In this document: one piece after another, positions 40,420-59,524 of the stretch
Layout: every line of letters starts with the position of its first letter
Position numbering within the stretch: the first letter of the stretch is position 1
Origin: Lepidodermella squamata
Taxonomy: Eukaryota; Animalia; Gastrotricha
Direction of reading: 5' to 3'
DNA: 64,000 bases
Assembly (NCBI GenBank): GCA_047495785.1
Contig: JBLDXI010000032.1
Coordinates: forward strand, 186,001-250,000
Translations under genes and position numbers: made by a program
Notes under the pieces: model-generated
The model's database searches: none
What the model was told of the DNA's origin: nothing
What the model saw: the letters and a program-made list of their open reading frames with translations, nothing else

Positions 40420-43400
40420 ATGACCTTTTGCCATCCACTGGTAATGATCGCGACTTTCTTCACTGTAGTCGAAACACAGCCTTCAAAGTTCAACTGGACT
40501 CTACCAATGCCGGGCCTCATAACATCCTCAAGCGGCTTGAGGAGCGGGAAATTGCGACTGAACATTTTAGCATCCATAAATTACGGTAAGACTTTGTCTC
40601 AATATCGTTTTCTGATCTCAATCTGATGTTTTCTTGAAGACGGAGCGATATACCCATTAGGACCACTATGCACTGAAGCTTTAAGGATCGGGCTAGATGC
40701 CCTAGAGCAGGCCAATGTTCTTCCTGAATACGAGCTTGCGGCAGAGCTTATCGATGATACGGTGAGCATTTTTTCCTATTGTAATTTCTGTTATACTCTG
40801 ATCGATCTCAGTGTTACCAGTACCCTGGAGTCGAGCGAATTGTTAGACGGTTTAATTCGGAGGACCCGGGCATCAACCGTGTCCCAATTATGACAGGGCC
40901 AATGTGCTCCCTCCATCGATACACTGGGCGGATGCTCCAGCATTATCAGATGATTGGGGTAGTATGATTTTTCAGTATTTCCTGGCTTTCTAATCCCATT
41001 TTAATACATCTCAGATCACAGCGATATCGCCAGTTCGCGAAGTTCAATCAATGCGAAATGCGTATCGCAATCTTTACGTAATGAATCCACCGGCCGAAGT
41101 CACATATCAAGCTCTCGCCGAGTTTGTTAATTCAATGGGATGGAGAAAAATTGCTGTGATAACTGAGTCATCCAGCTATTGGCAAGAGGTTGGCTTCAAA
41201 ATTTCATTTTTACGTGTTAAAAATTTCATTTTTGCGTGTTTTGCTCAACAGGTTGAAGGGTGCATTACTAAGGAGCTGAAATCGCGCAACATATCGATTG
41301 CAGGAGTTACTAAGGTGGTTGCTGATGCTGATCCGTCTATGATGGATTTCGAATCTGCTGTAGTCGAAACGATAAAATTTGACTCTAACATATTTCTGAT
41401 TAATACGTATCATACCGCCGCAGTTGCTTGCTGGTTCCACCGCTACAACATATCGGGAAGTGGCTACGTCTTCCTAATAGAAGGCCACGGAATCTTTTAC
41501 CCGAACGATCGAAGCCATCAGTTAAGCTGGTGCAAAGAGGCTATGTTACTCAAGGTAGGTTGATCTAGATTCGGTGGAGATTGGCATCGTATTTTCTGTA
41601 GATGTTGCTTAGCACCTTTCTCTATGATTTCTCATCCGCGGCGAATGATGATTCTTTGGGAGCCCAGAGTGATTCTCTCGGAATGACGGCACGGGACTTT
41701 GAAAATCGCTTGAAATCACGCATTCAACGTCCAGAAACGAATTCGTTGTGGTGGGAGTGGAGAACTTATTGCTACAGCCAAATCGTTGCGGCTGGCTTAG
41801 TTCTAAATACTACGGAATCTTATTTGAATTCAAGTTATTTTAGCTATCTACTTTAATTTTCAACTCAGTAATTTATTCAGGGAACGAAAGCTTGATTGAT
41901 TGGGCAACTGGCAGCAAGAACTTCCGCAACAATGGTCAAGTTATCGAGGAAGCTTTAAAAAAGGAATTGCATCGGCTACGATACAAAACCCTGTTAGGGT
42001 ATGATCTGCGATTCGATAACGTTACCGGTGCAAGCAAGGCGATTAGAAACGCCACAATTTATCAGATTAGGAGCCGTTCGAATGGAACAAGTATCTTGAT
42101 AGAAACAATTAAAATTGAGAAGGTCGGATCGTACTGGAGGAACTACTCTGGAAAGGGGTTATATACCCCAGGACAAGTCATCTGGCAAACGAAATCAGGC
42201 AAACCCCCTTATGATTCCATTCGAACTATTGTCATCGGCAACAATTTAATCTCTCCTTCAATCCGTACAATATTGCTAGGCAAGTCCACATACCAAATAT
42301 TTCTTGTTCAATAATGTTCTTGAAATGTAATAGTTATCGCAGCCACTTTGCTTGTTGGAATCTTTTGCATTTCGGCTATCAATGCTATCAAAGTTCGCCA
42401 GAAGAACCGCGCAGTTTTGAACTCATTCCCGCTGCAAAACTATCAGATCCTAATGAGTGATACGTTTTTGCTTCTGGGCGTTTTAGCTACGCCAGCGGAG
42501 TTTCAGGATGTCACTTCGACAAGGTGCATGGCAACAATTGGTCTACTCAACATCGGGCTGATCAACCTTATAACAGCCATGTCAGTCAAAATGATGGCAG
42601 CTATTTGGATCCGTGAAACTATTACTCTGAAGTTTGAATCAGCAAAAAGAATGAAATTCAACAGCAACTGGTCATCGAAACAGCGTTCTACGCATCTAGA
42701 GGCGCTCAAGCAACGGGAGAGAAAGCGCGTTGAAGACTACAAAAAGAAGCTGCGACCGCTATGCACCATCGGCCCTTCGATCATGTTGGTTTACAGTATC
42801 ATCTGGTTTACCGTAGAGCCACTTACTGTTTCAGTTGTGGACAACTACTTCGAAAATGCAGTTGATAGCATTCGAATTCGGCATTATACGAGGGTCTGTG
42901 CCCTCCCTCCGACTCTTGCGTCAAACGTTCTGCTCGGACTCTTTGCCACAATTTACGCCATATTGCTTTTAAGGCAAATACCACTTGCTTTCTATCTTCG
43001 AACGGTAAGGAATTTAGTTGAGTTATGTTATTCAGCTATTTCAAAATTCATTAGAGCTCACTGGAGTATATGAATGATTTGCACTTGGTGTCGACATCCG
43101 CTTATTGTACCTGCATATTCGTGCTTGCCGCAACCACTCTCCTTGCCTGTTTCTTCAACAACAACGGAAGTGTTGTTCAAACCGGCATCGCATTCACTTC
43201 CGTTGTTATCGTGTGCATAAGCCTAGGGACAGTATTTTTACCTAAGGTAAGTCTGTTTTAGGCCTATTTGCATTATCATTCCAATTTGTTCGTCATTGCA
43301 GTTCCGGCAAGGCTATTATCTTCAAACTCGACCGAAGAGACGTACTAACAATAAAGATATGCCAAAGATAGAGATTTCTACTCCCGTTCCGAACAATGAT

Positions 43401-43520
43401 TCCCAGCCTCCATCACAGCCAGGATCCAAATTCGACTCTCAGCCCGGTTCCCTCAACACTGGCTCTAAAGAAACAGGTTTAGACTCGGAGCCAAGCTCCA
43501 GCTCCAGTTTGCCCAAGTGA
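40420..43520 (+). CDS. GABA-B-like class C GPCR 1 (Venus-flytrap + 7TM), about 9 short introns
   Basis: Signal-like start; ELIDDT-C..GPMCS; FVNSMGWRKIAVI; 7TM with WFTVEP, MNDLHLV and VFLPK; no Cys-rich domain. First intron 40586-40639. Confidence 0.8.
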
Positions 43521-43582
43521 TTCATTCACAAATGAAAAATGGCATTAAATGCTTACAAGCGCCAGCAATTTTAATGTTTGAC

Positions 43583-45266
43583 TCATAAAAGAATGGCTTC
43601 AAGATAGATACATTCACGATTTTGAAATAAATGCGTCACCTTTACATCAGAGTCCAAAGCATCATCGCCGTACAAAGCACCTCTTTGATTTGCTAGTTGA
43701 GCAGGCCCGAGAGCCTCGTAAATTTTGTATAATTTAAAACGTGGGTGAGCTATAGTTGAGTTTAACCTTCTTCCTGTTTCGTCGCGATAGTTGCTCCAGA
43801 TTGGTCGATATAAAAACGGCTTTAGTGGGTCATTTTCAGAATTGAAGCTAAAAGCTTCTGAGATAGCGGTTAGAATGCTATCGAGATTAACTTGTTCAAT
43901 TGAGACAAACGCGTCGAGAAACTCGAATTTCCCACGCTCTCGAACAAAGAAATGAAGATGATACGTACTACCGTAAGACATGCAGCCTGAGGCTGGAATT
44001 TGCTTCAATTCAGCCTGCCGAATGCGATCAGCGACATGAATGCATAGTCGACAATTAGAGTGAACATTAGCAAGGTCTATAAGGGCGAGGAATTGAGCAG
44101 ATGGACCGGTTGTTTTCCAGGATAGATAGGCTTCATAAGCCGAGTCATCTTGCGACAATGAGATCATTTGACTAGCTACGGCTTGTACATCTTCCAAGGT
44201 GTTTATAACCAGTACTGATTGATTCGAAGGTTGAAAATCTGCGATATTAGGCGCTCCAATGATTACAGGCACGGTTCCTTCTTTTAGGGCCTGGAAGAAC
44301 TTTTCAGTAACATAATCGATCTCAATCGAGTTTTCGAAAGCTGAAAAATAGAAAAAGTGAGCAATCACAATCCAGCTAGATAATTAGCATACCTAGGTGA
44401 AATTTGTATCGACCGATGATGTGTTCTTTCTGCTCATACAGGGCGTTGCGCTTACGTCTGTATAGCGACTGCGCACAGCCGCCGAAAAAATCGACCAATA
44501 CAGGAGATATACTTTGAAGAGTCTCAACAGCTTTCAATCTGAAATTCATAGCATCACAGTTTGAAATGAAAGCTGAAGATAGAGCGATGGCTGATTTTCG
44601 CCTCGGAGGAGCCATGTAGTCGTGGAGAGCCCATGAAAAGTAAGGTACTGGTACGTCGCTGTCGAGGCGAACTGTCATCACAACATCGAAAAGCCGCCTG
44701 GCAGTCTCGAGGTCATTTAATTTAACGTATGCTGCTGATTCCATCGAACGATACACGGATAACACAGTTGATCGATTTTCGAAGGGCCAGAGGGTGAAAG
44801 CTGCGTCCATATCAGGCTGCTCACCAGTTACTACCTCCTGTTCCACCGAGGGCAATAAGATGCACCTTATAGAAGCCAGAATTATTCAAAATGAAATGGG
44901 ATAGCAGTCATGCGCCTACCTGATATCGCAATCAGTGACCTCCTGAGCAATCGTAACGGAATCTGAGTTCCCGATCACAATAGGTTGAGACTTGAAATCT
45001 CTGCTAGATAACTTTCGTCCAGAGTAAAATTTGTTAAACTGACGCCGTTTTGCGTCATACGCAGCGAATCGCCCAGACATGGCACCCCAAGCTAAAGAGT
45101 TGTTGGCTAATTTTCTGCTACGAGAATTCAGGCGCGGGCTGCTGGTGCTTAGTGGCATGAAACTAACATTCTCGTCCAATGTGTCTATGCTTGCGATGGC
45201 CAAAAGTCCGATGAATAATACTATTTCGGCCCCGATCACGATAAAAATCTTCGAAACTTTCTTCAT
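43583..45266 (-). CDS. GT10 alpha-1,3-fucosyltransferase, plant core-FucT-like, copy 1 (exons 44920-45266, 44393-44865, 43583-44340)
   Basis: Type II TM; RSMES; SDVPVPYFSW; FISNC..NFRL; YKFHLAFENS..DYVTEKFFQAL..GTVPVIIGAPN; HSNCRLCIH; VRERGKFE. Confidence 0.9.
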
Positions 45267-57940: not shown

Positions 57941-59524
57941 TCATACAAAAATCACTTCGAGTTGGATGCAGTCTTTTTTCGAGCTGAAGAGACGAACAAC
58001 TTTCTCGTCGGAATCAATTGCCGAACGACCGAATAGAACTTGACCATGAGGTGTCCCGACCTCGTAGATTCGGTACAGGTTGAAAGAAGGTGCTTTGTTA
58101 CGAGGGAAAGCTCCTGGCGGGTGCCGACGGCCAATTTCGTCCCTAACCCAACTCCAAATCGGCCAGTACTCCTTGCCCTTAGTTACCGCCTCGAAAATCG
58201 TTTGATTAAGGCGGTGATATGTTAACTCTGAGCTGTAGATGAAACCTTCGCTGAAGTTGAATCGGCCCCGTTCTCGAACTTGAAACCGGAAGACACTTGT
58301 CGTTGAATTAAGCTGGCAGTTACAGACTTCCTGTTGTTTCGACTTTGCCCTCTCCAAACTTCTAATACGGTCTGCAATTTTGATGCATAGCCTGCAGCTT
58401 GAATGGACCACCGATAGATCAACCAACGCCTTGAATTGTTGCGAAGGGCCAGTTTTCTTCCAGGCCAGCAATTTTTGATACTCATTCTCATCAGCGGAGA
58501 GTTGTTGCATCTTATCCGCAATATTTAAGACCTCAGCCAGGGTTTCGATGACTAAAACTGAGTTAGTCGAGGGTTGAAATTGGCGAACGTTAGGAGCTCC
58601 GATAACAACAGGTACAGTCCCTTCAGCTAGACTTTGGTAAAACTTCTCAGTTACGTAATCAATATCGTTCGAGTTTTCAAAGGCCAAATGGAACTTGTAC
58701 TTGCCCATGATTGCCAATTTGTCAGAGTCCAGCCGCTTTTGGTTAGGCCCACATAAGCCATAGACCTCGACTATCGGCACAGGAGATCGCCGGCTTTCGT
58801 CCTCGAGGACTTCAATAGCCTCTGGTCTGAAGTTGCGAGATTCGCAGTTGGAGACAACAATCGACGACAGAGCCGCGGCAGTTTTTTCTTGAGGTGGCTT
58901 CATTATATCGTAGAGTTCCCATGAAAAGTAAGGGACAGGCACGTCGCTGTCCAGTCTAGGCGTCATAACTAGGTCAAAAGCAGATTTCGCCTCTTTCAGC
59001 CTAGATTTTTCGCAGTAGACACTCGATTCCATGGTTCGGAGGACAGATAGGCCAAGGTAAGGCTTTTCCCGAGCACTCCCGGGTTCTTCCACAAAACTAG
59101 CGTCGAAATAAATGCCCTTATCTTCGTCGCTCAACTTCGATTCGGGTGGGTAGTGAATGCAAGGAACTGGGCAGTTGTTGATTAGGGAAGATTCGTCGAA
59201 ATTAGAGCCGCCCATCCTAATAGGATTTTTCAAAAAATCTCTCGCGGGGCCTGAATCCTTATCTCTTTTAGTTCGGAAAAATCGCTGGGACCACCACAGC
59301 TTTGCAGATTGGCAGGTTCTAAAGGCCTCCTCAGCGCTGCCTGGGTTACTCCTCAAGACATTTGGAAGATGTTGATTCAAGGTGATGGCTAAATTGTTTC
59401 GAGTCTTCACGCTTGAGTAGTATAGGAAAATGACGGCAATCTCGACGAAAACACCTGCAATCAGGAATATTGAAAAGAAAGATGGCTGGCGAAAATTCCT
59501 CGGCAAAAATGCGAGAATTTTCAT
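57941..59524 (-). CDS. GT10 alpha-1,3-fucosyltransferase, plant core-FucT-like, copy 2 (intronless, 527 aa)
   Basis: RTMES; SDVPVPYFSWELYDIMKPPQEKT; SNCESRNFR; YKFHLAFENSNDIDYVTEKFYQSLAEGTVPVVIGAPN; WKKTGPSQQFKALVDLSVVHSSCRLC; VRERGRF; ends LEVIFV. Confidence 0.93.
   Translation of the reverse strand: MKILAFLPRNFRQPSFFSIFLIAGVFVEIAVIFLYYSSVKTRNNLAITLNQHLPNVLRSNPGSAEEAFRTCQSAKLWWSQRFFRTKRDKDSGPARDFLKNPIRMGGSNFDESSLINNCPVPCIHYPPESKLSDEDKGIYFDASFVEEPGSAREKPYLGLSVLRTMESSVYCEKSRLKEAKSAFDLVMTPRLDSDVPVPYFSWELYDIMKPPQEKTAAALSSIVVSNCESRNFRPEAIEVLEDESRRSPVPIVEVYGLCGPNQKRLDSDKLAIMGKYKFHLAFENSNDIDYVTEKFYQSLAEGTVPVVIGAPNVRQFQPSTNSVLVIETLAEVLNIADKMQQLSADENEYQKLLAWKKTGPSQQFKALVDLSVVHSSCRLCIKIADRIRSLERAKSKQQEVCNCQLNSTTSVFRFQVRERGRFNFSEGFIYSSELTYHRLNQTIFEAVTKGKEYWPIWSWVRDEIGRRHPPGAFPRNKAPSFNLYRIYEVGTPHGQVLFGRSAIDSDEKVVRLFSSKKDCIQLEVIFV

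Follow-up and report, generated by a model that had tools for sequence, protein, structure and literature searches.

Copy 1 of an AtFUT11-like fucosyltransferase family in Lepidodermella squamata: a three-exon gene with two short introns probably gained after gene duplication

In the 64,000-nucleotide stretch of Lepidodermella squamata DNA analysed here (the window) we identified a gene, referred to below as copy 1, that is likely to be an intact and spliced three-exon GT10 fucosyltransferase gene whose introns were gained after duplication, whether the family itself came by vertical descent or by an old transfer. The sequence-only reading of this DNA had placed two GT-AG introns of 54 bp and 52 bp in the gene, and on re-reading of the sequence both their coordinates and their lengths proved exact. 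The gene model is as follows.

45266 to 43583, minus strand: copy 1 gene, three exons totalling 1578 nt, 525 codons plus stop
45266 to 44920, minus strand: exon 1, with the ATG at 45266, ending after two bases of an Arg codon (phase 2)
44919 to 44866, minus strand: intron 1, 54 bp, GTAGGC...ATAAG, phase 2, splitting the Arg codon of C-D-I-R-C
44865 to 44393, minus strand: exon 2, acceptor subdomain and beginning of the donor subdomain, with matches to PF00852 and PF17039
44392 to 44341, minus strand: intron 2, 52 bp, GTATGC...TTCAG, phase 1, splitting the Ala codon of KFHL-A-FENS
44340 to 43583, minus strand: exon 3, remainder of the GDP-fucose-binding Rossmann subdomain and C-terminal extension, including the stop codon at 43585 to 43583

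Exon 1 encodes a hydrophobic signal anchor at the N terminus (IFIVIGAEIVLFIGLLAIASI) and a stem. It also contributes the RDFKSQPIVIG motif and, of the CxxxC pair, the first Cys, and its tail aligned with the RDFxKxP..G motif of plants and of the paralogs. Exon 3 carries the N, E and K of FENS..DYVTEK, the HSNCRLC motif and a C-terminal extension of the AtFUT11 type (VRERGKFE, PIW, LYKIY, LEAILL). The plant-like motifs named in the sequence-only reading (HSNCRLCIH, VRERGKFE, LYKIY and LEAILL) were all found in the translation of this exon, residues 1-250 of which align to the C-terminal end of plant, algal, Rozella and aphelid proteins. The similarity of copy 1 to the AtFUT11/FucTA-like subfamily is of the full-length kind that marks this group: it takes in the acceptor subdomain on the N-terminal side and, past the GT10 core, the C-terminal extension. 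If intron 1 were left unspliced, an in-frame stop would follow directly past the donor, and an unspliced intron 2 would shift the frame, since 52 bp is not a multiple of three. An AAG acceptor such as that of intron 1 is usually rarer than CAG or TAG.

Searches and trees with copy 1 were run exon by exon, the spliced 525-aa protein never being used as a query. The match to the GT10 C-terminal model PF00852 breaks precisely where intron 2 lies: exon 2 covers profile positions 8-62, and exon 3 covers 64-173. The bit scores of 30.3 for exon 2 and 68.6 for exon 3 (E 7e-19) lie above the cut-off of 23.9, which places the gene in GT10. The reference for the comparison with a known enzyme was AtFUT11 (FucTA), a core alpha-1,3-fucosyltransferase of Arabidopsis thaliana. 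Copy 1 has a GT10 sequence match to AtFUT11 (PDB 9s6a; PMC12929593) over both exons 2 and 3, query residues 20-155 of exon 2 falling on residues 52-178 of the chain in the structure (E 6.6e-28) and residues 1-182 of exon 3 on residues 182-357 (E 2.6e-40). FUT9 (8d0o), by comparison, matched exon 3 at E 2e-5, and the animal Lewis/FUT9-type and FUT10/FUT11 (POFUT3/4) enzymes share PF00852 with copy 1 but only about 30% identity over the catalytic core. At the junctions themselves, joining the split codons gives the Ala of KFHL-A-FENS and the Arg of C-D-I-R-C, which restores the C-x3-C pair common to every relative, and no residue is missing at either junction when copy 1 is compared with the intronless paralogs. 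This full set of residues indicates that the introns are precise insertions. Intronization of former coding sequence was considered as a source of the introns and ruled out, because the residues are complete at both junctions relative to the intronless paralogs.

Copy 1 has a RasGEF-PDZ gene, class C GPCRs and an M13 peptidase among its neighbours in the window. The label "host-style" that the introns had been given is borne out by other introns of the genome. Neighbouring genes contain ORF-joining GT-AG introns of 54 bp (40586-40639) and 50 bp (43005-43054), which also diverge fast between C32, the contig of the window, and a second genome copy on contig C7, and the exon gaps of HSP70 paralogs elsewhere in the genome are roughly 47-58 bp. 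The 54 and 52 bp of copy 1 fall in this host minimal-intron class. The GC content and GC3 of the copy 1 exons are those of host genes. We also searched the genome with each copy 1 intron and 4-5 flanking bases and found no further copies, intron 1 matching only its C7 counterpart in addition. Introner-like or transposon-derived introns were rejected on the ground that neither intron has similar copies elsewhere in the genome.

The second genome copy provided an independent view of the gene. Positions 34569-61198 of the window correspond to an inverted collinear block on C7 (2129466-2155999), which extends over 26.7 kb at 95.4% identity, the synonymous divergence in copy 1 being 0.14-0.23. The assembly therefore contains either two haplotypes that have diverged strongly or two homeologous segments. 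Most non-intron sequence of the block is far more conserved than neutral. Copy 1 has a counterpart in this block that is about 95% identical and retains both pairs of splice sites. The exons of the two differ by 4.2-5.5% with no indel, intron 1 differs by 20% with a single 1-bp indel and intron 2 by 23%, GT and AG being retained in both introns. The introns of copy 1 diverge 4-5 times more than its exons, and both intron-bearing bins stand out from a regional C32/C7 divergence that averages 4.6% per 200-bp bin. The plus-strand neighbour converges on copy 1, the two stop codons lying 62 bp apart (window 43520-43583), and the low divergence of the 3' flank of copy 1 is explained by this gene end lying so close.

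Selection on copy 1 was estimated with the NG86 method from the C32/C7 pair. Copies 1 and 2 were unsuitable for such an estimate, since at a protein identity of roughly 47% their synonymous sites are saturated. The dN/dS values were 0.067, 0.030 and 0.153 for exons 1, 2 and 3, at dS values of 0.23, 0.19 and 0.14, respectively, and by this measure strong purifying selection acts on each of the three exons. The intron divergence of 20-23% against dS values of 0.14-0.23 indicates that the introns evolve at about the synonymous rate, and the dN/dS values of 0.03-0.15 together with the kept splice sites argue that copy 1 is selected as a spliced gene. Both introns show the marks of spliceosomal introns: they have GT-AG ends, their removal restores frame and homology, and their splice sites are kept while the interior diverges. 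The comparative evidence thus supports the view that both are genuine.

These observations make it very improbable that copy 1 is a decaying pseudogene whose "introns" are merely frame-breaking insertions. Decay does occur in the family: in the C7 counterpart of copy 2, a 7-bp deletion within the conserved LDSDVPVPYFSW motif (C7 position ~2131705, matching window 58938-58944) shifts the frame. This counterpart, which elsewhere has 95.6% identity to copy 2, is probably a pseudogene, an assembly error being less likely. In copy 1, however, all three exons are open in both genome copies with no exon indel and with the low dN/dS given above, both insertions have GT...AG ends in both copies, their excision restores conserved motifs exactly, and the catalytic and donor residues are intact.

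The genome (121 Mb) holds at least four paralog lineages of AtFUT11-like fucosyltransferases, the other three being represented by the following genes.

57941 to 59524, minus strand: copy 2, an intronless single frame of 527 aa, about 47% identical to copy 1
C32 262745 to 264124, same strand as copies 1 and 2: copy 3, uninterrupted, found by genome search
C32 1311791 to 1314223: copy 4, found by genome search, with an intron of 705 bp

Copies 1, 2 and 3 form a same-strand tandem array of no more than 35 kb and have C7 counterparts, and the genome search found no C7 counterpart of copy 4. Copy 4 carries an acidic insertion after the CRLC motif. The earlier description of copy 1 as a second, strongly diverged paralog of an intronless gene agrees with what we found, namely about 47% identity to copy 2, membership of the same AtFUT11-like subfamily and a single 527-aa open frame in copy 2. 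Beyond this subfamily, some 40 further GT10 matches at about 30% identity are present in the genome, several of them in tandem clusters (C24, C19, C45, C9), and judged by similarity the genome holds a large expansion of more usual animal-type fucosyltransferases.

The public protein searches returned nothing close to copy 1, the best match being 51% identical. The public proteins nearest exon 3 are all environmental (P0121 at 51%, P0002 at 49% and P0001 at 48%). P0002 and P0004 form an intronless tandem pair of 583 and 591 aa on an environmental contig (L014, 435-4101), where they adjoin INTS15, CCSMST1 and an HMG-box gene. These neighbours indicate that the contig comes from an animal, and the pair indicates that the family has been tandemly duplicated in a related, unsampled animal too. 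A scan of JGI metagenomes returned 72 loci, none of them above ~39% over the full length; short partial matches at 47-53% (L027, L052, L054) were found in these data, none of them informative for the intron sites.

In the exon 3 tree (236 columns, careful search), all copies of this genome and P0001, P0121, P0002 and P0004 form a clade of 11 rows with support of 100/95, the branching inside which is a polytomy, and the land plants form a clade of their own (100/99). The exon 2 tree recovered the same set at 97, together with one very long stray branch. A tree of 380 columns, in which the clade was represented by its intronless members, supported the clade at 98/98 and placed copy 2 as sister to P0001 (100/96). 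This pairing indicates that the duplications predate the split from the organism that bears P0001, and with at least four paralog lineages it agrees with the earlier description of the gene as old and duplicated. The trees, which were built without Drosophila FucTA and C. elegans FUT-1, put copies 1 and 2 in one well-supported clade as had been expected of them, but do not resolve them as sisters. Copies 2, 3 and 4, P0001, P0121, P0002 and P0004 share clade and architecture with copy 1, to which they are 47-51% identical, and differ from it in having no introns at the copy 1 sites.

The sequence-only reading had offered either intron gain in copy 1 or loss in copy 2 mediated by reverse transcription. 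The frames of copies 2 and 3, P0001, P0002 and P0004 are uninterrupted across both copy 1 intron sites, and copy 4 is continuous across them as well. Its own intron, of 705 bp and phase 0 (GTGAGT...CAG), lies at a third site, VRE/RGRF (L006 2881-3585; C32 ~1313171-1313875). For plants, exon boundaries were read from plant-derived metagenome contigs and fall at P0091 residues 118/119, 172, 251/252, 288, (340) and 416; those of copy 1 fall at about 126 (intron 1) and about 267 (intron 2) on the same scale. The first plant intron, which is in phase 0, precedes the site of intron 1 (phase 2) by 7-8 codons, and intron 2 (AtFUT11 residue 268, phase 1) falls within a plant exon. Two environmental eukaryotes (L019 and L029) have introns after FENSQ and after FENS, both in phase 0 and 5-6 codons from intron 2, and three protist or fungal-type contigs (L021, L023, L026) are intronless. 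Neither copy 1 intron position was found among the relatives examined, which comprised plants, environmental relatives, the intronless paralogs and copy 4.

With these positions unshared and the copy 4 intron placed elsewhere again, the sequences favour gain in copy 1 over loss mediated by reverse transcription. The most economical reading of the sequences would be that introns were gained independently in single paralogs, namely in copy 1 and in copy 4. Two short introns would have been inserted precisely into the intronless ancestor of copy 1, without loss of a codon, after the copy 1 lineage had separated from the other paralogs but before C32 and C7 diverged. An unlikely alternative is that the introns are ancestral to the clade and were lost in copies 2 and 3 and in the environmental genes, for example by recombination with reverse-transcribed mRNA. 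The polytomy of the clade leaves room for a single early loss, one joint loss in the ancestor of all the other copies would be about as economical as two gains if copy 1 branched first, and the intron of copy 4 shows that the clade is not uniformly intronless. However, neither position occurs in plants, L019, L029, L021, L023, L026, P0001, P0002, P0004 or copy 4, and the tandem, same-strand arrangement of copies 1, 2 and 3 points to duplication at the DNA level, which would carry introns along. With the copy 4 intron at a third site, the ancestor would moreover need three unshared introns followed by several independent losses.

The gene had also been described as an acquisition of a plant-type enzyme. 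Among named proteins the best matches come from plants and green algae (36-43% identity), and the Atlas clusters nearest to the gene belong to Streptophyta. No named animal protein was found among the 30 nearest cluster representatives looked up. Named relatives in plants and the green lineage comprise land plants, Selaginella, Chara, Mesotaenium, Spirogloea, Closterium and Coccomyxa. Outside the green lineage they comprise Rozella, Amoeboaphelidium, Heterosigma, Pinguiococcus, Leptophrys, Salpingoeca and Naegleria, and the subfamily includes sequences of early fungi and aphelids, a choanoflagellate, stramenopiles, Rhizaria and algae. Given this spread across eukaryotes, resemblance to plant enzymes is not enough to demonstrate gene transfer, and the label "plant-type" is misleading.

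The position of the clade was then considered in the trees and in AU tests. In all trees the clade lies outside the land plants and the streptophytes, the latter forming a clade with support of 96 in a quick tree, and in none of them did we find supported nesting within, or a sister position to, a plant donor clade. On the set of 380 columns, which was built from intronless copies and has more power than exon 3 alone, holding the clade with land plants was 18.9 log-likelihood units worse (p-AU 0.047, a borderline rejection). Grouping it with the named early fungi, as against the named plants, algae, stramenopiles and Rhizaria, was not rejected on the same columns (p-AU 0.152), which leaves room for vertical descent with losses. 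The AU tests on exon 3 alone, which have low power, rejected neither land plants (p 0.377) nor seed plants (log-likelihood 45 lower, p 0.142). The plant-derived transfer was therefore not upheld by the spread of the subfamily, by the position of the clade or by the test against land plants, and a land-plant source of the clade appears disfavoured on these sequences.

A broader version of the proposal has the whole clade enter long ago by horizontal transfer from a plant, an alga or another non-animal eukaryote, with later duplication and a domestication of which the copy 1 introns would be part. We regard it as possible but rather doubtful. The matches to plants and green algae, the lack of named animal proteins among the representatives looked up and the failure of the exon 3 tests to reject a grouping with land plants or seed plants are in its favour, and the absence of every plant intron position would fit a transfer via cDNA. 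Against these stand the presence of the subfamily in Rozella, Amoeboaphelidium, a choanoflagellate, stramenopiles, Rhizaria and Naegleria, the position of the clade outside the streptophytes with the test against land plants, the unrejected grouping with early fungi under which the gene could have descended vertically with losses, and the host-like base composition and GC3 of copy 1. In particular, an ancient transfer from an alga or a fungus-like eukaryote into this invertebrate lineage, with introns then gained separately in copies 1 and 4, can be put forward only tentatively. If it were true, the introns of copy 1 (52-54 bp) and copy 4 (705 bp) would be separate new spliceosomal gains in a once-foreign intronless gene, and the gains would be datable between the paralog splits and the C32/C7 split.

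We next considered what the copy 1 protein may do. AtFUT11 residues were mapped onto copy 1 via P0091 (offset -1; 14 of 14 residues match), and the roles of these residues, i.e. the catalytic base E158, the GDP-fucose contacts and the acceptor contacts, were taken from PMC12929593. Copy 1 and its C7 counterpart conserve E158, which is residue 42 of exon 2. Copy 1 also retains the GDP-fucose contacts F216, S218, N219, R226, K256, N271, E280 and K281 (AtFUT11 numbering), of which F, S, N, R and K sit in exon 2 and N, E and K in exon 3, as well as Y192 and H361; the contacts from S218 to K281 in this list are conserved in the C7 counterpart too. Copy 1 and AtFUT11 are both of about 500-525 aa with an N-terminal membrane anchor, and they have in common Glu158, the GDP-fucose contacts, the CxxxC pair, HS.CRLC and the C-terminal extension (VRERG.F, PIW). 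In contrast, copy 1 is only about 38-40% identical to AtFUT11, none of the 5-6 plant intron positions is common to it, and its residues at the acceptor contacts Y163 and E197 are V and L. R248 is replaced by Q, and the whole animal clade varies at these three positions. From these features we infer that copy 1 encodes a GT10 fucosyltransferase of the Golgi type, with a type II signal anchor and GDP-fucose as donor, which would add alpha-1,3-fucose to a glycan.

In AtFUT11 the E197A substitution nearly abolishes activity, with a minimal remainder (PMC12929593). E197 is replaced by L, T or I in all members of the animal clade, copy 1 and its paralogs sharing a hydrophobic residue or Thr at this position, and Y163 is replaced in all members except P0121; Rozella and Coccomyxa retain E and Y at these two positions. 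There may have been a clade-wide shift in acceptor specificity. With two acceptor-contact residues replaced in copy 1 (Y163 to V and E197 to L), the enzyme may act on an acceptor other than the plant N-glycan core.

For the glycobiology and antigenicity of these animals, the acceptor-contact replacements across the animal clade mean that its glycan product may differ from the plant/insect core alpha-1,3-fucose epitope. As a case of intron gain specific to one paralog, copy 1 is ordinary but tidy, and specialists would not be very surprised by it. The case is a clean one of paralogs from a single family told apart by short introns with precise insertion points, the intronless copies and the C7 copy serving as controls, and copy 1 may accordingly be useful for studying the timing and mode of intron gain in compact animal genomes.
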